Assembly (NCBI GenBank): GCA_002104945.1
Contig: MCFH01000040.1
Coordinates: forward strand, 310,001-374,000
Direction of reading: 5' to 3'
DNA from: Piromyces finnis finn
Lineage: Eukaryota > Fungi > Neocallimastigomycota
DNA: 64,000 bases
Shown here in pieces: positions 22,916-61,759 of the stretch (position 1 is the stretch's first letter; the number at the start of each line of letters is the position of its first letter). A program made the position numbers and the translations under genes. The notes below the pieces were generated by a model. It was not told where the DNA came from and searched no databases. It was given only the letters and a program-made list of their open reading frames with translations.

Positions 22916-23341
22916 TATTCTATACACATTTAACAAATAAATTAAAAATATAATATAATATAATATAATATTACTATAAAAAAAAATACACATATCTACG
23001 AATTTTTTTATTTAGTTAGTTATTTATTTTATTTATGCTTATTCCTATTTATGTTAAAACAATTTTAATTGTTATAAAAATAGATATTTTAGCTTATATC
23101 CCCTTTTTAAAAATGTTTTATAATTATTAGGGTGAAAGGGTTAAATTTTTTTTTGTACATATTACTTTTTTTATTTTGATATTATATATTTCTTTTTTTT
23201 TTTTTTTTTTTTTTTTTTGTTAAAAAATGAAAAAAAAAAAAAAAAAGTATAATGAATTGTTTTAGAAATAATAATTTAAATTTTGTGTTCTTATTTTTAA
23301 AAAAAAAAAAAAAACAAATCTTTTGAATTAAGATATATTTT

Positions 23342-23389
<48 letters not shown>

Positions 23390-23593
23390 GGCATCAAATA
23401 TTTTAAACTTTATTATTAATTTAATTAAAATTATAATACATAAATAAAAATAAAAAAAAAATATGTTTAAATAAACACAAATGAATAAAAATTGGGTATA
23501 ATGTATTCTAGTAATTTTAATTAAAGTAAGAAAGCCACTATCATACTAAAGTATAATAATTGTATTTGACTTCCAATGGGACACCGAGCCAAA

Positions 23594-23627
23594 GATCAAA
23601 ATTTTGTCATGGAACAAAATTATGATC
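23594..23627 (-). other. 3'-terminal stem-loop of the LINE, overlapping the stop codon
   Basis: gatca-a-aattttgt catgga acaaaatt-a-tgatc: 13 bp with one mismatch and a 6-nt loop. Confidence 0.6.
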
Positions 23628-26600
23628 TCCATTGGTTGCGCTGGCCCTCCTGGCCTGTCTTACTGTTTCTTCAGCATTGACGCTCTTGGATGTTGCTTCA
23701 AACCTTTTGAACATTGACCATTGCTGGCCAATAGCAAAAGGCATGATTTTGGTTAGAAGTTCCGCGGTTACCGTCAAGAATGGTGCTCCTTCATTAGTAC
23801 CAGATTGAATCTGACGCTTACAAAGTTCTTTCCATTCCCTTGAATTGTAATTAATATTGTTAAAACTTCTTCCCCCAAGAAGGAATTTAAATATTTTACT
23901 GCACACACTAGAATAATCATACACATTAATATTCACCGGATTATTAGAACTATTACTATCATTAACTAAATTACTATCTAAATTAGAATTATTATCTTCA
24001 CTATTGCTATCATTACTAATATTATTATTTCTATTATTGTTATTATTACTATTGTTACTATTACTATTGTTACTATTACTATTGTTATTACTACTATTGT
24101 TACTATTACTATTAATGTTATTACTATCTCTACTGATATTATCAATTTCATTATTATTGATAGGACTATTGGAATTACGTTGACTGAAAAAATTTAATAG
24201 CTGGACTATAGAATCATAATGTTTAATACGGATATCTCTAAATGTTGGACAATCTAATAACCAATGTTTAATACTTTGATCTCCACACTTGCAACATGGA
24301 CAGTAGTTAGGACAAACTGGATCAACAAATTTGGCAGCTTTGGCAACTCTAGCATCCAACTTGTATCCGCTTCTTGCTTTCAATAGCCAGTAGAAGCCAT
24401 AGGCAAACTCTGGGTACTCATAACATAATTTAATAAAATCTTTAGTTTCAATAAATTTATTATCATCATAATATTGCGCTTTGATTGAATTCCCTTTGAG
24501 ATCTTTCCAATAAAAGTTTTTAACTGCTTTAACATCTCCATGTTTCTTTAATTTTTTATCAAGTGTCCTACTTGATTTGCACCACGTGTATTTTCTAAAT
24601 TTAGGAATGTAATTGACAAGGTGTGAGATAATACAATTCGAGTTTTTCCATTTGTTAAAACATCTAACCTGAGCTAACGCACATTTGGCTGACAATGGAG
24701 GAATATTCAAATCTTTTGAAATAGAGTATAAAGATATAAACGATACAGCTTTATGAACTCCGGCAACCTATCGTATTCCTTTGTTAACATGCTTCTGAGC
24801 AATCCTAGACCTAGCTTTGTTGGATCCAAGTAATGGTGCAAAGTATGAAACTCTGCTAATCACTTATGAGTTAAGTACTAGTTTTTTGAAAGGAATAGGA
24901 ATATTAGGATTTCTTAAGAATTTACTGACTGAGAAAAGCCCTTTCAAAACCTTGTTATTAAGAGCTTTAATTACTGGTTTAAGGGACAAATTCTTATCAA
25001 ATGGAACACCAAGATAAGTATAACAATCAGTAGTTGGAATGGGTTGTCCTGCTAAGTAAAATGTTGGATCTCTCTTGTTCTGATTTTCTATTGATTCAGG
25101 ACGAATCACCATCGTTGAACATTTCTGGATACCAAATTCCATTTCATTATACAATGCCCATTCATTAACTCTTCTAAGCATCTTTTTTAAGCATCCTCTT
25201 GTTGGAGCACAAATAACTATATCATCTGCAAAAAGTCCACCACAGCATCGAGTGTCACCTAAACTGACTCCTAGATCTTCGCACTCTTTAAATATATCAT
25301 TAATAAAGAGATTAAAGAGAATAGGAGAAAGAGGGCATCCTTGACGGACTCCTTTCTTCACATCAAAAGATTTCGAGAATTGTCCATCTCGGATTCCTAA
25401 ACAATCTAATTTATGGAGAATATTACCGATTGGGACTGAATCGTATGCTTTCCTGAGATCTAAAAAGGCCAAATATGTCTCTTTATTATCTAATTGACGT
25501 CTACGGCATATTTCTTGGATTGAAATGAAAAGACTAATACTTTCTTCCTTTTTTCGAAAACCAAATTGTTCAGGTCTAATGAAATTATTCTTTAAACCAT
25601 ATTCTGAGATTCTAGTGGTGACAATTTTGGAAATCAACTTAATACCATTATTGATAAGTGATATACCTCGATAGTTATCACAATCTGTCAAATCTCCCTT
25701 CTTAGGAATAGAAACAATACTGGATTCATTCCATGAGTTGGGGAAATCTCCATCCCAAATACGGTTGAATAATTTAAGAATAAAATTTAAACCATGAGCA
25801 TCATTATCTGAAGTAGTATTACCAGAAGAATTATTATCTGTAGCATTATTAGAATCATTACTTGATGGAACTAATGCTTTGTAAAATTCAATTGGAATAC
25901 CATCCGGACCTGATGCTTTATAATTTGGAGTAGTGAGGATAGCTGACTTGACTTCATCAATACTAATATCTTGGTTGATATCCCACTCATCAAGCATAGG
26001 AAGTGAAAAACGTTTATTCGTTGGTTCTTCATACCAATGCTCCAAATCAAGACTTACACCACTTGGGTCTGATGCAAGATTTTCGAAATGATCATGCCAC
26101 ACATCTAGTTGTTCTTCCGTAGCAACAACTAATTCTCCATTTTTATTTTTAATTGGTTGAGCAATAAAGAAAGAATCTTTTCCAATTTTTGCAGTTTTCT
26201 TGATCCATTTCCAGGCCTTCTTAGGATTATGACTCTTCATATACTCACATCCTGTTTTAATCCAATGAAGATATTCTTGCTTCCTAAATTCATTACATCT
26301 TTTGTGGATGTAATCAATGAGTTTACGGTAGATTTTAATTCTTTTAATAAATTCATCTATATCATAAATTCTTTCTTTTTTAAATCTCTTATACAACTTC
26401 ATTTTGATTTTTTGAAGATTAAAAATTTGTTGTGAAATATGAAATGAAGACTTTATAACATTATTTGCTGAGGTAATACTGAGCTCGTCTGCAATTGAAA
26501 AAGCAGTTGAAGTAAACTCTTTGGAAAGTTCATCTGTAGAAACATTAGGATCGTTGGATTTTGCTGAAAGTATTTGGAATTTATTATGACTGAGAATAGA

Positions 26601-28082
26601 TTCCTTTTCCTCAATACATTTTAATCTATTCCATTTCAGAATTTTCTTAGGAACATTAAAGTCATTAGAAAAATCTTCCATAGGAATAATTTTACCATTA
26701 ATAAGAAGTGGCTTATGGTCTGATACAGGATAAAAATTATTTATAAATGATCCTGAGTGAATAAGATCTTTCATCTTCGAATTGATAAGAGCATGGTCAA
26801 TGTCGGAAGATTGATCACCTCGAGTCCAAGAGATAGTAGACCCTCTAAGCGGAAGAATTTCCCAATCTCCTAATCCATTAGTTGATAACCAGTTGGATAA
26901 TTTTACTTTAGACATATTAAAATCACCAACAAGAATCGATGGATGGGATGAATGAGTTTGTAACCACAAGCGAACTTCTAACTTTGCATGATCAACATAG
27001 ATGTTGTGATGACTATGAGGCATATAAACATTTCCAATCGAGCATTTGAATCTATTCCAGAGACTAAAAGTATAAATAGAAATAATATACTTTCCAGAGA
27101 AGTTTTCAAGTGAGGCTTGACACGAATTGTGAAAACCTAAATATAAACCTCTCATTCCCGGAACCGATTCGTCAGCTTTCTTGAAAAAGTGTCTATAGTT
27201 TCGCAAAGTAACACGACAAGGATAATCTGTATTCGATCTAGAACCATTACCAGTTTCTTGGAAACATAAAAATAATGGTTTGAAAATAGCTGTGAAATAG
27301 CTAATACTATCTCTCTTTTCATGATTCCACCCATTGGTGTTCCAACTAAGACAAAAAGAAAAGTTATCAGGCTTGTTGGATGAGGAAGAATCGTTGCTAT
27401 TATTATTATTATTAAAGTCATCGTTATTAATGGATGATGCATCAGAGGAATAAGTAGAACTATTACTAGATGGCTGTGAAACTGAAGAACTATCAACTAT
27501 TGAACTGTTATCAGAGTTGATAGAACTATTAGAATTAATTGTTGAATGTTGAGATTGAAATTGTGTTTGCTGTAGATCTGGAATATTTTCATGATGGGAA
27601 ACTTGTTGAAGATCCTGTTGAAGATCTTGTTGAAGATCGGATTGTTGATGAGATTGTTGAACTGATTGTTGAACTGATTGTTGAAATGATTGTTGAATAG
27701 AATGTTGATATTTATTAGAAACTAAAATTTTACGTTTGAGAGTGGAAAAAGTGTATTTGTGATTCCTTCTACTACGAGCTGAAAAGGAAATTGAGGTAAC
27801 TGAAAGTTTCTTCTTTAACATGTGTAAGATTTTAATACAATCTTTCGATGAACCATGAACCTTGACTAAGAAAAAGTGATCATTGAAAGTTTGAAAATAT
27901 TTAACACTAATAACTGAATTAAATTTATCTTCTAGAATAACCTCGAGTTTTTCCCATAGCATATTTACTGACCATGATCGAATACCACGGATAAAGAAGG
28001 AGCGAATATCATCTAAGGGGATACCATAAGACCGGGTACCACGTCTGATATAATTCTTATCTTTAATATAAAGGACTGACAT
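23607..28082 (-). pseudogene. LINE APE-RT polyprotein (~1,490 codons) with two in-frame stops and a probable internal RT deletion
   Basis: ORFs 24864-28082 and 23607-24710 are in the same frame, separated by TAA (24864-24866) and TAG (24768-24770; IR*VAG, likely TGG>TAG). RT reads LGIR|DGQFSK near 25390, where homologues usually carry ~20 more residues (inference). Confidence 0.85.
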
Positions 28083-28625
28083 GATAATAAATTCTAATTA
28101 AAAAATATTGAATATAAAATAAATACTAATAAAAATTACAAATATAACGTATATGGAAAAAAATCTGTCTCTCTCTCTCTTCTTAAAAGTACTGGATAGT
28201 ACAAAAATTGTTACGATGCTTTGTTTAAAGTTTCTTTTTTTTTGAATTCTAGTTGTAAATTTTCTTTAAAAATTCTAGTTTTGGTTTGTTGTTAGTAAAT
28301 TCGATTCGCTTTTTGACACTAAACTTGTTTGACTTTACTTTTCATTAAATATTTAAATTGGTAAAAAATTTGAATCAAGAATGTCGACACCAGAAAGCTT
28401 GTGAATAGTATTTTTACATGATATAGAGTGAATCAGTCTCTTACAAGAAACAATACAACAATAGCTACATGAATATAAAAGTACAATGCAAATGCTAAAG
28501 TTGACTACATTGGATTCTTACAAGAGAAGAGTAGTACTACATGAATACATGAATAAAAGAAAAAATACAGCAACAAAATGTATTACTCTTCTAATTAAAT
28601 ACTATACAAACTTACCTGAAAAATC

Positions 28626-28974
28626 AAACATTCACTTATTCATCAAATACTTAAATTTGATGAATAAAATGTTTTTTAATCGCTCAGTACCATGAGCTTA
28701 GTCCTAATAATTTTCCCTTAAAGACTAACCAAGCATCCATTGCGCAATGCTTGGATTTAATTCTTTCTACTCTCTCAGTACCATGAGCATGAGTAGACCC
28801 CCTTGAGAAATTACATTTATTAAATAAATGAAGGCACATTCCTAAGAGGGCACCAAGCATCCATTGCGCAATACTTGGATTTAATTCTTTCTACTCTCTC
28901 AGTACCATGAGCATGAGTAGACCCCCTTGAGAAACTACATTTATTAAATAAATGAAGGCACGTTCCCAAGAGGG
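28626..28974 (-). ncRNA. Candidate structured RNA leader (hairpin array) on the LINE sense strand
   Basis: Near-contiguous stems. G-U wobbles are accommodated only on the minus strand, and there is one compensatory C-G/U-A change between monomers. It does not match the hammerhead, HDV, twister or hairpin ribozyme consensus that I could test by eye. Confidence 0.5.
28728..28974. repeat. Tandem duplication of a 124-bp GC-richer, hairpin-forming monomer upstream of the LINE ORF
   Basis: Copies at 28728-28850 and 28852-28974 differ at 4 positions, all transitions. A third partial copy (gctcagtaccatgagc) lies at 28682-28697. Confidence 0.95.
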
Positions 28975-29389
28975 AAGATATATTTTAATATTTATAGATT
29001 ATTTTTTGTTTGTTTTTTATAAATTTTATATTTTTTATAATAGATTTTAATATTGCTAATGATGAAGTAAATAAAAAGTATATACTATATGTATAATCCT
29101 TTTTATTTCTGTCTATACACAACTACTTCAAAACAATACTAATATAAAGAAAAAATATATATATAAATAAATACTATATATGTATATATATATATATTTT
29201 TATAATATATTTAATATATAATAACAAATAACAATATTTAATTATTTCTTTTATAATTTATAATTAATAATATATGTGTATTAATGTATATGTATATAAA
29301 TATATATGCTTATTTTTAATACTATTTTTATGATTTTTTTTTTTTTTACAATCTATTTAATTTATTATATTTATTAAGAATTGATTTGT

Positions 29390-31938
29390 TTATTTTTTAG
29401 TGGTTCTTCTTCTAGTAGTAGTTTTTTTGGTGGTGGTTTTCTTGGTAGTAGTCTTTTTGGTAGTGGTAGTCTTAGTAGTAGTTTTCTTAGTGGTGGTAGT
29501 AGTTTTCTTAGTAGTGGTGGTTTTCTTAGTTGTTGTAGTTTTCTTAGTAGTGGTGGTTTTCTTAGTGGTAGTGGTTTTCTTGGTAGTAGTAGTAGTAGTA
29601 GTAGCAATTACAATTGGTTTTTGAATGGAAGAAAGATCAACCTTCCAAGAAACAGCTGGAGATAATTCAATAGTTTGAGTGTCACCCTTCTTTAATGGAA
29701 CCCAAACAGTTAATGGATCATGACCAATTTGTTCAACAGTAGCCCCTTCTGGAAGAGAAGATTCCTTAACACCACTTGGAACAGTAATTGGAACAGTACA
29801 ATCACCAGTAGAAGCAGAAACTTCAATACTAACAATTTTATCATCTTCCATGATTAATCTAGATTGATGACCACAAGCTTCTCTTTCAGCACGTTCAATG
29901 AAAATTTCAGCTTGTCTATTAATCTTAATAGAAATTAAAGGCCAATCAACATATTTGGTGTAGGCCTTAACAACAGCTCTAGTCCAATCTTCTAAAAGAC
30001 TTTCACCATAATTACCAACCTTTGGATAGGAACGAAGATTAGCTTGATGGAATTGATGAGCTTCATGACGAAGTCTAAGCATTAAAAGAAGAGTACGACT
30101 AGCTTCACTTTCAGCAATTTCATCCCAAGTTAAGTTTCTTGAGTAATATTCGTAATACATATTGTTAAACATCCAGGTATCTTCTTCTCTACTAGAACAT
30201 AAGTAGTAAATTTCAGTTGGAGTACGTGGAATAACTGGGAAACCAGCATAATTACTGCTTTCAGTAGTAGTGTAGAATGGAAGATATGGATTTTCCATGT
30301 TACAAATGGCTTCACGACTAAGATCACCTGTAGCAGAAGTGATACCATACTTTTCAAAGACTTCAAGAGCATCCTTGTTATGAAGACCAGAAATTTGTGG
30401 AGTGACAATAGCATGTCCAGACCACCATTCCTTGTCAGTAAGACCTAACATTTCAGCGACTTGAATATTTAAACGAATTTCATTATCAACATCAGAAGTT
30501 GAAGCATTATCAAGATTTTCATGACTGAAAGTGTGAGAACTCCAGAAGAATTCCTTTTGAGCAGTACTATTGTTTGCAAAATATTTAAAGAGACTATCTT
30601 TTTTGAAAGTATTAAGTTGAGTCTCTGAAAATTGATAGTTTGCCTTTGGCCAACGTTTATCACCAGTACCTGGTTCCTTAACATATTCAATATCAACATA
30701 ACGTTCACCATCAATTTCAAGAGCCTGGTCATAATCAGCACTAATTAACATACCGTTACCATTGAAAGCTAATTCAGATCTGAAAAAGGAACCTTCCGGC
30801 ATATCCTTTAAAATATCTTTTTGGAACTTAGCAATTTTTTCAAAATCATATTTAGAAGTACGGAATTCTTCACTGTATTTGGAATATTCTAAATTATTCT
30901 TAACATCAACTAATTCTGTAGAAAGGAAAACATCATCAATATGTGGAGTAAAGTATACACGACGGAAACCATTGTATAAGGAACGAGTACCCCATGATAA
31001 CCATAAGTGATTAAGAACAAGACTAGTTACAGTCCATTCACCAAATCCGAAATAGAAATGCATCTTTTCACGTCCATTTGGATAAGTGGTAACAGCAGCA
31101 GCAACAGCACCCTTGGCACCCTTATCAGAATAATATAATAATGGTTTAGTGTTGACAGGATTGATAATTTTAACACGAGTATGATAAATACTAATTATAT
31201 CGATTTACATAAATTTTTACAAATTTTTGTTTATAACAAAGATCAATAAAAAAAAAATTAATGCATTAAAAAATGAATAGAATTTAATTAATTATATTTC
31301 TGTAAACCATACTATTTAATAATAATTATAATAATAATTATTATTCCTTATTAATTTTTAAAAAAGTAAATTATACTTTTTCATTATTAATATTTTACTT
31401 ACTCATTAATATCTAATGGAGCAGTAGTTTTAATACCAGCATCATTAAAGATTTGTTCAGTGAAAGAAGAGTCATCAACAATTAATGGTTGATCAGCAAT
31501 AGTAGAACCCCATTTGTTTGGGTTTTCGATAGCAATTTCAGTATCATCTTCATAAATTTCTTCTTCAATAACAACTCTACGAACCCCATTCTTAGCTTCA
31601 TAGTCTTCTAAATAAGCCCATTGAGACTCTGTTAAAGCACTGATATATAATTTGTTAACTTCAAAAGCAAGAGAGCCACCATTAACAACAATAAGGTTGT
31701 ATTTTGGTTCATTGTTTTTATCATACAAACTTAAATTACCTTCTAAATCATTAGCTTTAGAAAAATTTATAATATCATATGGAATACCATAAGATTGAAA
31801 ATTGTGAGTAATATAATCAGCATCAAATGTTGTTGTAGATAAAACTAAAGCCTTCATTTGAATAGCTTCTTTTGCAGCAACAGCAGTCAAACATATTGAC
31901 ATGCCTACAATTTTAAAAATATTTAATATGCGAACCAT
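29390..31938 (-). CDS. agd3: Secreted Agd3-like (CE18) polysaccharide deacetylase, 2 exons (31403-31938, 29390-31190), 778 aa, Lys/Thr-rich tail
   Basis: Signal peptide from ATG 31938. GT-AG intron 31191-31402 restores the frame (...DIND IYHTRVK...). Motifs RRVYFTPHIDDVFL and FFWSSHTFSHENLD (DD and HxxxH metal-binding), TPQISGLHN, HQFHQANL, as in Aspergillus Agd3. Confidence 0.82.
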
Positions 31939-34900
31939 TTTTTGAATATAATATTTTTTATACAAATAAAAATTCTAATATATTGTGTTGTTCAATTTTT
32001 TATTTTTTTTTTTAAATATTAATTATAATTTTTTTTTTTTGGAAATTTAAATGAATTTTATTTTATAATTCTTTAAATTTATTTTTTGCTTTTTTTTTTG
32101 TTTATATATATATAGAAAATATATCTTTTATAATAAAAACTATTATTTTATTATAAATATTATTAAATAATCACTTTAATAATAATAATTATAATTATTA
32201 TTATTTATTCCTTTATATATATATTTTTTATTTTTTATGGCAAAGAGTTTTTTTTTAAAAAAAAAAATTAATTTTTTAGTCTTTTATACTTTTTTTTTTT
32301 TAATATATAAAATTAATATTTTGTACTTCAAAAATTTACCCAAAAGAAAGTGGACAAAATCAAAGGAAAAAATTGGTTAATCATTTTAAATTTATGATTG
32401 AATCAATGTCACCCGTTTCTTAGAGGTAAATAAATTAAAAAAAAATTGGAAATAATAAAACGACATTTTAAGACAATTTTTATTTTTTTATGTAAAAATT
32501 AGGCGTACTATTGTGGTTAGATTTATTTATTAATTAATGGAAAAAAAATAATTAAATCCATTAATTTATTATATTAAATTTTATAACAAATAATAATAAA
32601 GTTTTAAAAGTTTTTTTTTTTAATATTATTTATTAAAAGAAATGATAATGATATGATAAATATTCAGGATAATGAATAAGAGATTACGATTTTTATTTAA
32701 AGTATCTTTTTCTCTAGTTATTATTTATTATAATTATTAGTATATAACATATAGTATAACAACTAGTATAATTTTATATTTAGATTTTTTATTGACATTT
32801 TAAAATTTTTAAAATTATTATTGAAAAAAAAAGGTTACACAGAAAAAAAATTTTTATATAATATTTTTTATATTAAAAAATAAAACTTTTTTCATATAAA
32901 AAATTTAAAAAATATTTATACAAAAATTATTTTACCATAAAACTACCATCATTTTCTTGACATATTATGACATAATAAATATTTTAGTTTTTTATACTAT
33001 TATTATTTATTTATTTATTTTTCATATTTATGGACTTTTTTTTTTTAAAAAAAAGTTTAATTTAAAATAGAGTTGAAATTTTAATATTATTTTATTGAAT
33101 ATGTATTATTTAAACTATCATAATTATTAATAAATATTAGTTAGAGCTTTACATAAAAAAGGGAAATTTTAATAATAAATAAATAAGGGATTTTACAATA
33201 ATGATAATTTTATTTTAGTATTTACCATTACTATTATTAAATATTGATATTATTATTATTTTATGATATTGTTTTATTTTTCATAATAATATACATTATT
33301 TTAATTTAGCTTTTATTATAAATAAAATTTAAATTTTTTATTTTTTAATTAATCTTTTAAACAGCTTGAAAACTTTATTTATTATTTTTTAATAAATATT
33401 AATAATTAAAAATAAAAAATAAAAAAAAAAACATAAATTATATATTATATTATTTTAGTTTTTTTATCATAGTCTTATAAAAGTACCTTTTTTTTCTTTT
33501 TTTCTTCTAATGAAAATAACACGTCAAAAGAAACTGATATTTATATGAAAATTATACTACAAAATTTTGTTTTAAATAAAATAATATTAAAATTTGTGTT
33601 TCATATTAATTAATTTCATGTTGTACAAATATTTAAACATTGTCAATTTTTATACATAAAAGAATATTCTATACATATTATTAATATATATAAAAAATAT
33701 TTGTTAATAAAAATATTGCCATAAAGGCAATTATATAAAATAGAATATTATTTTTTTTTTAAAAAAAAAAGGTACTTTTATTATCATGAATATAAAAAAA
33801 TTATTTTTTTTTTCAATTTTAAAATAGTTTAATTATTTTAAATAAATTATTATGTATTAATTTTAATATTAGTAGTATTACTATTACTATTTGCATACTT
33901 TTCAAAGTTTTAATTAAGGATAATATTTTCAAAAATTTAGAAAAATTTTTGAAAAACGCATTATCTTAGTAAAAATTATTATTATTATTATTATTATTAT
34001 TAGTAGTAGTAGTAGTGGTAGTAGTACTAATATTATGTAGGCATTTATTAATATTACTCAACAAGTAATACATATTCTTTTATTTTGGCACTATTATATA
34101 TTATTATATCTTTCATCATTTTATTGTTTCTATATGTCAATATTAACTTAATACAAATTAAATAATACATTATTTTAATAAAATGATAATTAAAATTTAT
34201 AAAATCTACGATTAATAAATGAAATATAATAATAAAGGTTTTTATCACTGTAGTAATATATTAATTATTCTTAATACATTATAATCGATAGAATCTATTT
34301 AAATTTTATTTTATTAACTCAGTTATCATTCATATTCTAAATTGAGCAGTATTTATTCATAGAAATATAATATATAATATTTAAACCTTTTTTTATTATT
34401 ATTATTATTTTAAATTTCAGATTTATAATATTATAATATTATATTACATAAAATACTAAATAATTATATGTTTTTCCTTTTTTTTAAAAAAATTTACTTT
34501 TAAAATCATATTGGTCATCATGGTTATTATTATTATCAATAGTATCGTTTGAATTGGCATTGTCGTTGTCTTTATTATTGCCATTAATTTTATATAATTT
34601 TTTTTTAAAAATTTATTAAATTAGGTAAAAAAATATACAATAAAAATAAAGATTTATTTGTAATAATTAAAAAAATAATAGTAAAATATAAGCATAAAAC
34701 AATTTTAAATTATTTAAATTATTATCCCCTTTTATTTGAATTTGTATAAACTTAACATACCTTAAAATATAATTATTTTAAAAATAAATTTATTAATTAT
34801 AAATTTAAAAAATTAAAAATAAATTTATATAAATACATTAATATTAAAGTAAAGAAATACAAAAAAACAATACTCATCTTTTTTATATTTTAGTTTATAA

Positions 34901-39047: not shown

Positions 39048-39578
39048 TCTTATCCCTAACATAATATTATGAAAAAAAAAAAAAAAGTAGATAATGTATA
39101 CAATTCTTCCTAGGTTAATTTTATAGAATTGATTCAAACATAAATGTAATGAAATGACAATTATAAAGTAAAAAAAAAAAAAAATTAAAAAAAAATTAGT
39201 AAAATAAATAAAAATTAAATATTCTGTTTAATCTTTTAATATCGAGATTAATTTATGATTAATAATTTGGTTTTAATTAAAAAAAATCTTTTTTTTTTTT
39301 TTGGCAAATAATAATATATGAATATATATATTTTTTTTTTACTTACAAGTATTCCTATTCATCTCAGTTACTAGTAAATACGTAGTCCTAAATTTTATTA
39401 ATTAATTCATTATAGAGTTTAATCTATTTAAAGCTTTTGTTTCAATCCAATACACGACTTTTTTTCTTTTTATTAAATTTAATATAATATATAGTAATAT
39501 AGTAATATAATATGGATAATATTTTTATAACATTTATAGCTTTAATAGTTAACACAAAAAATACAAAAAAATATTTAA

Positions 39579-39689
39579 ATTTTTATTATTATTATTATTA
39601 GTAGTAGTAGTATTATTATTATTTATTATTATTATTATTATTTATTACTATTATTATTATTATTTATTATTATTATTATTATTTATTAC

Positions 39690-39782
<93 letters not shown>
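39579..39782. repeat. (ATT)n microsatellite, ~200 bp
   Basis: Directly visible; it explains the poly-Ile ORF in the track. Confidence 0.95.
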
Positions 39783-51036: not shown

Positions 51037-51707
51037 TTAACTACTAATTCGTTCTACTCTTTGTATAGTTTTATTTTTTTGAGCTCTTGATTTAGCTAAT
51101 AAACCAGGTGTTTTTAATGCTAATAATTTCCACATAGACTTTGGCTTGGTCTTCTTTTTATAGTAATAACCGATAACCCATATCGTCCATAATGGAACAA
51201 CAGCATAATGGCCTAAATACCCTGGTGGAATAGAATAATCTTCACCTCGAATAACTACCTTATAAGATTCTGTTTGGCATTCAGCATTTCTAGTAGTAAC
51301 GGTAGAAGTGACAGATTTAGAAAATATGGATTGAATTTTTGTTGAAAGTAAGGTTTGTTGAGTATTAGATTTTCCTAAATAAATACCCTGAGATGGAGAA
51401 GGAGTAAATGATGATCCAGGTGAAGAAAATAACATTGGGTTGGTAAAGGTTTCTGGTGTTGTGATATAAAAAAAAAAATTATTATTATTATTATTATTAT
51501 TAAAATATTAATGATATATTTTAATAGGATGGTTTTCATTTCATACTATAATCAATATAATAAATAATAGTTTTACCTTTTGTATGGTTTTTCTGTTTTC
51601 TTTTATAATTCTTTTTATTTTTTACATTAATTGGTTTTGGTCCACTTGAATGTTCTTTAGTAATAGACAATTCAACGGAATTATTATTATTGTTATTATT
51701 ATTATTA

Positions 51708-51770
<63 letters not shown>

Positions 51771-52696
51771 CCATTAGTAGTATTAATGACATTATTATTA
51801 TCATTATCAATATATTTATTATTGTTAACTTCAATATTTTTATTTATTACTGTATTCTTTGTATTTTCGCCTTTATTACTAAGATCAACTTCAACTTCAG
51901 CATCTTTTAACCTTGTATTTGGATTTACTTTGATAGCTTCTGATAAATTACTTTGAGAATGGCGAAGAGAAAGATTTTTCTTTTTATTAATAATGATAGT
52001 ACTATGTTCTGAATTTTGATTAGTTTTATCTGATTCTTCTTCCTTCTCAGCCTCTTCACTATCTTTTTTTTCTCTTTTTTGTTGATTCCTTATTAATTTT
52101 TTAAAGGTTTCACTGATCTTTTTAATTTGCTGTAAATTACCAACAAAAGATTTTTCATCAGTAATATCATCAGCATCTTTTTCTTCTTCTAAATTTTCAC
52201 CAATACTAACAATTCGAACAGGTTCTTTTTGGTCATTATTTATGGTTTCAAGAATAATAACCTCACTAATAGAATCATTTATTTCTGTTTGAACCTCTGA
52301 TTCTGTCAATGATTGTGAATTCGATAGTGTTTGTGTTTGAATTGAAACTTGATCATTATGATCAATGACACTAGAAGAAGGCGTAGAATACAAGAATTGA
52401 GAATCAAATACTTTAAAAGCGTCAACTAATTTATACAATGCATATTTTAGTTTAGCATTAGATTTTGCTGCATTAATAATGGCATCTACTTTATTTTCAA
52501 TAATACTTTCCAAGTAACTTTCTTCGGCAGAAGATAAAACAGAAGAAATGTCTTTTTGAACTTTTTCACCGTCCTCATTTTCTTCATTCTTATTACTACA
52601 AAAATCCAATAAGTTCATTAAATTTTGTAAATCATTTTGTAATTTTTTTTGACTTTCATATAAGTCAGAAACATTTAATAAATCAAATACTTCCAT
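51037..52696 (-). CDS. Uncharacterised coiled-coil, Asn-rich protein with a C-terminal hydrophobic segment; 2 exons (51577-52696, 51037-51452), 511 aa
   Basis: Start MEVFDLL at 52696. Donor after AAA G (51577) and acceptor CAG at 51453 join the two ORFs in frame. Poly-Asn is encoded by (AAT)n. Hydrophobic YAVVPLWTIWVIGYYY near the end. Confidence 0.7.
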
Positions 52697-59608: not shown

Positions 59609-60354
59609 ATGAGTTCAACTACTTTAAAGCACAAGAATAGTGATCCATTACCAAACAGCGAACACGCTGGTTACTGGCCATATTCAAGAGAACAATATTC
59701 TCATGCTTCTATTATTTTTGAAAGATTTAAGTCTTGGAAGTACAGACTCGAAGTAAAAATAGCAATATTTATTTATATAATGTTAATTTATTATTTTTTT
59801 AAAATGTAAATATTTATTAAACCATTATTTATATTTTAAAGGAAGTTGAAGAATTTTTCGATGAAAATGAAAAGATTGAAAGACAATTATCAAAGCAATA
59901 TAAAAAGATTGCTGAAGCTTTCAAGCCAGTTGAAGACGAATATGGTAATTGAATATTATAATTTTCAAAAAATAATATATGAATATATATAAAAATTAGA
60001 AATGTCGAGAAATAAAAAATTGTTTAAATTTTTTTATTAATTATTATATAATTTAATAAATTGTTCATAATAATAGGAGGTACTTCAACTTATTTAACTC
60101 CAATTTACAATACTGCTATTACTTTATCAAAGGAACATGAAGATTTCTCAAAGGTTATGATGGAAAAAATTAACAAAAAAATTTCTGAAATCAAAAGAGA
60201 ACATGAAAATAAATACAGAGTAAGTAAATTATATTAAGTAAATTACATTTGAATAAATTTTTTATTGGAATTTGAAAAATATAAAGTTTTGAGCTATTTA
60301 ATGTTTGTGTAAAATTAAATGTCTAATTATTATTTTATTATATTATTATTATTA

Positions 60355-60442
<88 letters not shown>

Positions 60443-61759
60443 GATATTATTTATGAATTAGTACCTTAAAACTAGAGTTGAAGAAGCTCAAAAGGAAACT
60501 GCTAACATTCGTAATTTAACTATTTCTTCTATTAATAATCATGAAAAAGCTAATAATGTTAATATCAATGCTAAACAACAAATGGATCCATGGTTAACTG
60601 AAAGAGTTGTTGTTAATGTTCTTGATAAGATGATTACTCATGAAAATTCTTTCCAAGCTTTCATGAGTAAGATGTTCTCTGATATTGCAGCTTTTGATGA
60701 AAGCACTGTTCAAAAATTACAAACTATTTTCACCGAATACTCTAATTACAAGATTTCTCAATATAGTAATTTAAGTGTAAGAATAAAATTATTCATTAAT
60801 ATTGAAATGCATAAATATAAAAGATTAAAAAAATGAAACTTTATACTAAAATATTATTATTATTATTATTTTAATTTTAATTTAAATACTAATAGGGCCA
60901 CTACAATAATCTCCTTCCATTTGTTAACAATATTCAATCTGCTGGACCATTCAGAGACTTTGACAGACGTTATCAAATTACTTCTAATGATATTTGGAGT
61001 AAGAAGCGTACTTTAGAAGAATTCTCTTACAAGATTCAACCACACTCTATTATCAAGGAAGGTCCACTCTATAGAACTGCTGAAATTAGATCTAGTCATT
61101 GGAAACCAGTTTGGGTTATTCTTACTGAAACTGGTTATCTTCACTGTTTCAAGATGGATATGGAAAAGAAGGTTATTCGTGATTACACTATTAAAAGACA
61201 AGGTACTGGAAGCAATATTGTTGCTGAAGGTCAAAAGGGTTACAATGACTTAAAGAAGCCAGAAACTTACTTCAGTTTAAGAATTGGTAACAATATTAAG
61301 TGTGTTGAAAGTACTAAGAAAAAGGCTCCAAAATACACTTTTGATATAGTTCTTGATAATACTGTCAAGTCTAGAGGTCCAGGTGATTACAAGGTTGCTG
61401 CTGAAGAAATCAAGAGAAAGAAGACCTTCTTTGGTAGTAAAAAACAAGAATCAAATGTTGTCTTTACTCTCCGTGCTGATACTCAAGATATTTACAACAA
61501 TTGGGTTGACAAAATCAATGCTGTAGCTGAAAATTCAACAGTAAGTGATTCTCTTGCTTCAATTGTTGCCTCTCCATCTGTTTTATCTTCTACTGGTTCT
61601 ATTAGTGCTTCTGATAGTGTTAGAAGTACTCCTTCTGCTTCTCAAGTTAATTCTCCAGCTCTTTCCCCACTTTCTTCAGCAGCATCTCTTCCAGTTGTAG
61701 CTGAAGAAAAAGCTGCTCCAAAGGAAACTGAAAAAAAGGAAACTGAAAAAACTGATTAA
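59609..61759 (+). CDS. Slm1-like helical (BAR-like) + PH domain protein, multi-exon
   Basis: Exons begin at 59609, ~59842, ~60078, ~60462 and ~60896 with GT-AG introns. FERFKSWKYRLE...EEFF N-terminal motif. PH domain IIKEGPLYR...WKPVWVILTETGYLHCF...FTLRADTQDIYNNWVDKIN. Ser-rich tail. Confidence 0.75.
60328..60442. repeat. Intronic (ATT)n microsatellite
   Basis: Directly visible within an intron of the PH-domain gene. Confidence 0.9.

Follow-up and report, generated by a model that had tools for sequence, protein, structure and literature searches.

A tandem 124-nt unit at the 5' terminus of an abundant L1-like LINE of Piromyces finnis: a candidate cis-acting RNA head

An abundant L1-like LINE of Piromyces finnis begins with a unit of 124 nucleotides (nt) that is present twice, head to tail. 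We consider it rather probable that this unit is a cis-acting RNA head at the 5' terminus of the element, that it also acts as an internal promoter module, and that it was duplicated by template switching or unequal exchange. The copy studied here lies on the minus strand of the window (the whole stretch of 64,000 nt of DNA that was analysed) and carries two young heads and one decayed older head. The fold of the head matches no catalogued RNA family and is not that of any known ribozyme class. For this copy, the analysis adds proof of its limits by target-site duplication (TSD), a position-consistent pseudoknot candidate, a head swap between lineages with 43% protein identity, and the decayed third unit. 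An earlier note on the same DNA had proposed a cis-acting RNA or a promoter monomer, and both stand as descriptions: the fold is strand-specific, tied to the LINE 5' end and covarying, and the units are in tandem at the start of the 5'UTR, with the promoter role putative and drawn by analogy.

The LINE copy and its tandem units

The LINE and its borders have the following features:

23344-28974, minus strand: full-length copy of an L1-like LINE, 5631 nt including an A43 tail, with TSD, poly(A), and APE and RT domains
28975-28988, minus strand: 5' target-site duplication of 14 nt, sense TTAAAATATATCTT, with an exact copy at 23330-23343
23330-23343, minus strand: 3' target-site duplication, directly after the poly(A)
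23344-23386, minus strand: poly(A) tail of 43 A
23607-28082, minus strand: single ORF frame of 1491 codons, with N-terminal region, APE, RT and Cys-rich tail
28404-28565, minus strand: conserved 5'UTR block (LINE nt 410-571), with repeated YCATGTAG / CTTGTAG (CTTGTA) / TTGTAAGAG..TGATTCACTC motifs

Read on the sense strand, the flank TTAAAATATATCTT is followed by CCCTCTTGGG..., which starts at 28974. Past 28991, the repeat depth of the source DNA run falls more than 100-fold, from about 3-6x10^5 to about 2x10^3, and contigs exit the element at 28974 into differing flanks. The repeats had been described as lying upstream of a LINE. This is not borne out: because of the 14-nt TSD, the A43 tail and the collapse in depth, they are the first 248 nt of the LINE itself (nt 1-248). 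The closest solved protein to the LINE ORF is human L1 ORF2p (E 2.5e-24). Two in-frame stops interrupt the frame (24864-24866 and 24768-24770), so that this copy, young-looking in its intact TSD and A43 tail, is unable to encode the full protein.

Downstream of the repeats, the 5'UTR block is 68-77% identical to the 5'UTRs of five related LINE loci (L002:443-560, L004:304-460, L009:1357-1513, L010:129-246 and L019:254-371), and it is conserved across LINE families whose heads are unalignable. The many upstream AUGs in this block suggest that translation may be non-canonical.

Regarding the rest of the element and its neighbourhood, the C-terminal region of the LINE has a low-complexity Asn/Ser-rich stretch (23970-24170, minus strand), and similar Asn-rich coding repeats are found at 39572-39767, 51680-51827 and 60310-60449; the likeness among these stretches is probably compositional, not homologous. 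At 27652, within a 12-nt coding repeat (27602-27708), all three probable RNA runs lack 12 nt at full depth, a deletion absent from every contig of the DNA run. It may be that a distinct subfamily is expressed, or that the RNA runs derive from another strain. The LINE starts 416 nt downstream of a gene in the same orientation (29390-31965, minus strand) whose Agd3-type domains are divided over two ORF pieces; CBM87 comes first, followed by a deacetylase domain (E 3e-83) and the Agd3 C-terminal domain. Judged by these domains, this anaerobic gut fungus seems to have a galactosaminogalactan-deacetylase homologue.

The units and the elements of the fold of a single head are located as follows:

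28851-28974, minus strand: head unit m1 (LINE nt 1-124), with terminal stem i, hairpin ii and hairpin iii
28727-28850, minus strand: head unit m2 (LINE nt 125-248), with 5 differences from m1
28615-28726, minus strand: decayed third unit m3 (LINE nt 249-360)
28962-28974, minus strand: 5' strand of stem i (P1) of m1, from LINE nt 1, pairing with 28922-28935
28890-28921, minus strand: hairpin ii of m1, a two-tier stem with hexaloop UGGUAC at 28902-28907
28853-28878, minus strand: hairpin iii of m1, a 9-bp stem with octaloop GCGCAAUG at 28862-28869

The tandem 124-nt monomers of the earlier note were recovered by Tandem Repeats Finder at 28728-28974 (period 124, 2.0 copies, 96% matches, score 466), and a 30-nt core has exactly 2 occurrences in the 64-kb window vs 0 expected. 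Units m1 and m2 form an island of 41% GC vs 21% in the genome, and they are joined without poly(A). When the full 124-nt units are compared, five differences are found, at unit positions 8, 13, 40, 102 and 124. The earlier note had counted four, all of them neutral for pairing; the four paired sites are neutral indeed, but the range ended one base short of the fifth difference, which is the last base of the unit and unpaired. In the third unit, m3, hairpin ii is kept almost letter for letter at 28682-28697, stems i and iii are replaced, and both the CCC start and the pseudoknot partner are missing. The decay of this internal unit suggests that only terminal heads are maintained.

The proposed fold of three elements on the minus strand fits both units in every pair: 40 of the 40 nested pairs are standard in m1 as well as in m2, with nt 1-13 pairing with nt 40-53 in stem i of both. 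Between m1 and m2, pair 8/45 is G.U vs A-U, pair 13/40 is C-G in m1 vs U-A in m2, and pair 102/117 is U.G vs C-G. A copy with a single head in one contig (X7 record 32) has U.G at pair 13/40, and this U13.G40 is the intermediate between the C-G of m1 and the U-A of m2. The claim that the fold is specific to the minus strand, i.e. the LINE sense strand, also holds. Folding energies are -43.4 (m1) and -39.8 (m2) kcal/mol on the minus strand (z -4.7 and -4.0) and -29.0 and -32.4 kcal/mol on the plus strand, and the G.U pairs work in the sense RNA only. By simulation, the probability that four random transitions are all neutral and include one double-sided pair is about 0.014; a shuffle control on m1 and m2 alone is powerless with its two rows. 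Taken by itself, the comparison of the two copies points to a selected fold through differences that preserve the structure, which is suggestive, not decisive. A subfamily variant of m1 was also observed at 28931 and 28937 (sense C44>A and U38>G, 16-17 contigs each), of which C44>A would break the G9-C44 pair unless compensated by an unlisted change.

Heads of related LINE families

The protein search identified LINE ORFs at 29-68% identity, mostly in gut and rumen assemblies, and the related families with heads, from gut metagenomes, have 34-65% protein identity. These relatives comprise 14 loci found via their proteins and 25 loci found via an alignment of the APE region in a metagenome scan; the same kind of scan with the N-terminal 250 amino acids gave no relative, and scans of viral contigs gave no protein relative. 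Two 18-mer DNA matches in viral contigs were rejected as chance, the contigs being unrelated and of 46-63% GC. In the related LINE loci there is no BLAST-level similarity to the monomer, and the 5'UTR block alone aligns.

The heads can nevertheless be compared by position. One family is represented by three insertions, L004, L009 and L030, whose flanks are unrelated; all three have the same CCCC start, which is also found in L002. Beyond these, seven further heads in six loci start with a CCC(C)-initiated stem, and such a start is seen in L001/L033, L017, L018, L024, L031, L032 and L006. In the relatives, the stem analogous to stem i begins at nt 1-3. For the L002 family, RNAalifold predicts the same order of elements as in the window, with compensatory pairs: first a long terminal stem that has a small hairpin inside it, next a hairpin of two tiers capped by a hexaloop, and last a third hairpin.

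Because stem lengths differ too much across families for a MAFFT seed, hairpins ii and iii were tested separately, anchored on their loop motifs only. The alignment of hairpin ii includes the window units, L002, L004, L030 and L006, and that of hairpin iii includes the window and two copies in L001; both are small sets of related sequences chosen by loop motif, so that the scores given here are not probabilities. Hairpin ii has the loop YRGUAC, with 93% of cells paired, double-sided changes at 4 of 5 stem pairs and 0 of 500 shuffles reaching the observed score. Hairpin iii has the loop GCRCAAUG, with 100% of cells paired, double-sided changes at 5 of 6 pairs and again 0 of 500 shuffles. When the pairing partners are slid as a control, pairing falls to 25-75%. 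The octaloop of hairpin iii is kept in L001, L033 and L035 on unrelated stems, and a search of both strands of 209 kb placed GCRCAAUG octaloop hairpins with stems of 5 bp or more in LINE heads only, on their sense strand. Judged by these alignments, the head fold is kept by covariation in the related LINE families.

A further helix could form between the segment that follows stem i and the loop of the second hairpin:

28957-28961, minus strand: window GUGCC (nt 14-18), pairing with GGUAC in the hairpin ii loop (28902-28906)
L001: CCGUA after stem i, pairing with UGCGG in the second-hairpin loop
L002 and L030: CGUACU after stem i, pairing with AGUACG in the second-hairpin loop
L024: CUAGG after stem i, pairing with CCUAG in the second-hairpin loop

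With different letters in each, four families can thus form a pairing between nt 14-19 and the second-hairpin loop. When nt 8-40 were shuffled in a Monte Carlo analysis, a helix of at least 5 bp starting at nt 13-17 was obtained in all four families in 10 of 20000 trials, the interval nt 13-17 having been picked post hoc. L033, which has the L001 head with a G-to-A change in the loop, turns a U.G pair of this helix into U-A. The helix is not clearly shown by L006b, L017, L018, L031 and L032. It is probable, though not established, that nt 14-19 and the hairpin ii loop form a compact pseudoknotted fold.

The relation between heads and proteins is not fixed. L001:359-456 and L033:151-248 are about 97% identical over about 98 nt, are divergent on both sides of the head, and belong to elements whose ORFs have 43% identity. 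Such a pattern suggests that the head passed recently between the L001 and L033 lineages. Since an about 97% identical head stands on two lineages with 43%-identity proteins, the heads are, on the evidence of these sequences, portable units. Likewise, L035 has an ORF 44% identical to that of the window and a window-like hairpin iii with a compensating indel.

Heads are also found stacked or duplicated. L006:1-260 has two unrelated heads and the end of a third, stacked without poly(A). The 5' flank of L004 (L004:1-73) is a poly(A), followed by a 5'UTR fragment of a foreign family (matching L018:319-371), CA and the head. L032 has a 136-nt tandem of its own (L032:1-191), and in L031 the terminal stem contains an internal duplication of 49 nt (L031:105-187). 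For the LINE of the window, joints in front of nt 1 lead from 28974 to 28944, 28892, 28858, 28783 or 28772, with one extra base, and the joined pieces end at nt 31, 83, 117, 192 or 203. Template switching at the RNA 5' end and nested or self-targeted insertion into resident heads fit these joints equally well.

Function and origin of the heads

In the reading that we favour, the head must sit at the 5' terminus of the RNA and would act in cis. Its task would be either to mark out and protect the 5' end or to bind the RNP of the element or a host factor; the conserved loops would be recognition or tertiary-contact sites, and the clamp stem would hold nt 1. The DNA of the head probably doubles as an internal promoter and start-site module. 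Two considerations lead us to this role: an autonomous LINE copy needs a promoter that lies downstream of +1, and heads pass from lineage to lineage much like the 5' regions of mammalian L1. The most likely route of duplication is a jump of the reverse transcriptase, on arriving at nt 1, onto a second LINE RNA immediately behind its head; alternatively, the tandem could stem from unequal exchange. Heads would be appended in front of nt 1 and exchanged between LINE lineages. Under the switching model, m1 and m2 would be the heads of two source copies, and their differences would preserve the structure because each was selected while terminal. The extra heads would be inherited because the RNA is uncut between them, and heads turned internal would decay, as m3 has.

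Among the alternatives, the one that survives best, though still unlikely, is that the units are DNA-level promoter monomers only, of the mouse L1 type, the inverted repeats and palindromes being transcription-factor sites and the RNA fold incidental. The tandem array is indeed at the 5' end of the 5'UTR, as a GC-rich island (41%) in an AT-rich genome (21% GC), and inside hairpin iii there is a perfect 10-bp palindrome, ATTGCGCAAT, which we take to resemble a bZIP (C/EBP-type) site. Mammalian L1 lineages repeatedly acquire new 5' regulatory regions, and the swapping of heads parallels this behaviour. Mouse L1 monomers, moreover, are documented promoters (PMC9022269, PMC6454616). However, the G.U pairs make the fold work on the sense strand only, and the stems change double-sidedly while the loops stay, which marks a hairpin, rather than a duplex site, as the target of selection. 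The motif of L001 and L033 is not palindromic beyond GCGC; this non-palindromic version in L001, together with the stem covariation, led us to reject ATTGCGCAAT as a DNA-only bZIP site. Promoter and RNA roles are not exclusive, and a dual role is likely.

It seems very improbable that the head is a new self-cleaving ribozyme, or the substrate of a cellular endonuclease, cut just 5' of nt 1, by which the LINE RNA would be freed from read-through transcripts as with the HDV-like ribozymes of R2 and L1Tc. Independent insertions and different families share one exact 5' end, located at the foot of a GC-rich P1; this would agree with such a cut, as would the compact fold with its probable pseudoknot. 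The Agd3-like gene 416 nt upstream is co-oriented, which makes co-transcription possible. There is also a precedent in L1TcRz, nt 1-77 of L1Tc, with three stem-loops and a GC-rich P1 (PMC3383444). A hairpin at the extreme 5' end would hinder cap-dependent translation, and this suits an uncapped, processed RNA no less than the reading preferred here.

The searches and the genomic copies nevertheless speak against cleavage. Rfam (4227 models) gave no match on the repeat (28000-29600, E<=10) and none in 11 related loci at E<=1, apart from two chance-level matches outside the repeat; the Rfam check proposed with the earlier note is thus negative. The models for hammerhead, twister, twister-sister, pistol, hatchet, hairpin, VS and hovlinc gave no match, and the Rfam search bears out the remark, made by eye, that the motif fits neither hammerhead nor HDV, twister or hairpin. 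Stem i corresponds to an HDV-like P1 starting at nt 1, as a structural likeness only. An HDV-like P2 cannot form: among the families tested, none of the helices with that topology keeps its position or register, the isolated P2 candidates of 5-9 bp being in unrelated places, and the bases that follow P1 find their partner in the next hairpin's loop instead. Almost no invariant unpaired bases, such as a catalytic core would need, are common to the families outside the two loops. Regarding processing by a cellular enzyme, ARAGORN found no tRNA-like fold or RNase P substrate in 28000-29400.

The boundary between m1 and m2 was intact in the RNA behind the TSD-flanked copy, though m2 keeps every pair. 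In addition, a contig of a probable RNA run bridges 28817-28903, including the m1/m2 junction, and other probable-RNA contigs run from foreign flank into the head; these runs are small assemblies with one dominant haplotype, and their assignment as RNA is a guess. Because the internal boundary survived retrotransposition and contigs cross both unit boundaries, the evidence argues against efficient self-cleavage between units, and a novel self-cleaving ribozyme, as proposed earlier, is unsupported: there is no Rfam model, no HDV-like P2 and no cut between m1 and m2, and the junctions are bridged by contigs. A similarly low probability is given to a wider formulation, in which the pseudoknotted head would be a new catalytic or processing RNA that defines the 5' end, either by cleaving itself before nt 1, slowly or under regulation, or by blocking a 5'-3' exonuclease through its fold, and would be portable and specific to the L1-like LINEs of anaerobic gut fungi.

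Least probable of all is an RNA-RNA pairing device, in which the loops GUAC (hairpin ii) and GCGC (hairpin iii) would kiss between LINE RNAs or adjacent heads, bring templates together and promote template switching and stacking. The window and L002/L004/L030 have a self-complementary 4-mer in loop ii, L024 has one (CUAG) in the loop of its second hairpin, and the window and L001 have one in loop iii; stacked or chimeric heads exist in L006, L004 and L033. In L001, however, neither loop ii (GUGCGG) nor the second loop of type iii (GCACAAUG) is self-complementary. Loops of 6-8 nt commonly contain a 4-nt palindrome by chance, and kissing explains three families vs four by the intramolecular pseudoknot. 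Complementarity between head loops and the 3'UTR was searched for and none was found.

Comparison with known systems

The 5'UTR monomers of mouse L1 (A, Tf and Gf) are arranged head to tail, vary in copy number, are followed by a non-repeated stretch before the ORF, and belong to lineages that acquire new 5' regions (PMC9022269, PMC6454616). The fungal units favoured here as RNA heads are likewise head-to-tail at the 5' end of the 5'UTR, with non-repeated sequence between them and the ORF, and fungal lineages too gain new 5' regions. Unlike the mouse monomers, they are 124 nt long, vs about 200, and the fungal copies start exactly at nt 1 of a unit and not inside a truncated monomer. The fungal unit is also a covariation-supported, strand-specific RNA fold, its promoter role being putative.

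The trypanosomatid Pr77/L1TcRz of L1Tc/ingi is a module at the first LINE bases of several retroposon families, with a GC-rich P1 that includes nt 1 and a dual role as DNA promoter and RNA fold; as L1TcRz, it forms an HDV-like double pseudoknot and cleaves in vitro (PMC3383444). Like Pr77, the fungal head is at nt 1 and is common to distinct lineages (L001/L033). Unlike L1TcRz, it has no HDV-like P2 and no Rfam match, and its internal unit boundaries survive retrotransposition.

The R2 5' UTR RNA, with an HDV-like ribozyme and protein-binding ability, acts in cis on the definition of the 5' end and on late steps of integration. The fungal head resembles it as a structured 5'-terminal RNA of a non-LTR element, without any match in sequence or fold. 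R2 is site-specific, with a restriction-like endonuclease, and is co-transcribed with rRNA, whereas the fungal LINE is APE-type, L1-like and dispersed. The stacked heads of L004 and L006 resemble self-stacking LINEs of the Zepp and Cnl1 type, although those cases concern the choice of target and not a conserved 5' RNA fold; the window units, being joined without poly(A), are a true tandem and not a nested insertion.

To our knowledge, structured 5' ends of LINE RNAs are known in few systems (R2, RTE and L1Tc), and tandem 5' monomers mainly in rodents. In the present case, the 5' terminus is exact, the fold covaries and probably includes a pseudoknot, and the module is both duplicated in tandem and transferred between lineages with only 43% protein identity; the fungal phylum concerned has received little study, and its LINEs are very abundant. 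The head offers a defined RNA family for the catalogues, and with it one could conveniently study how the 5' end of a LINE is marked and regenerated, and whether 5' modules come by template switching of the reverse transcriptase.
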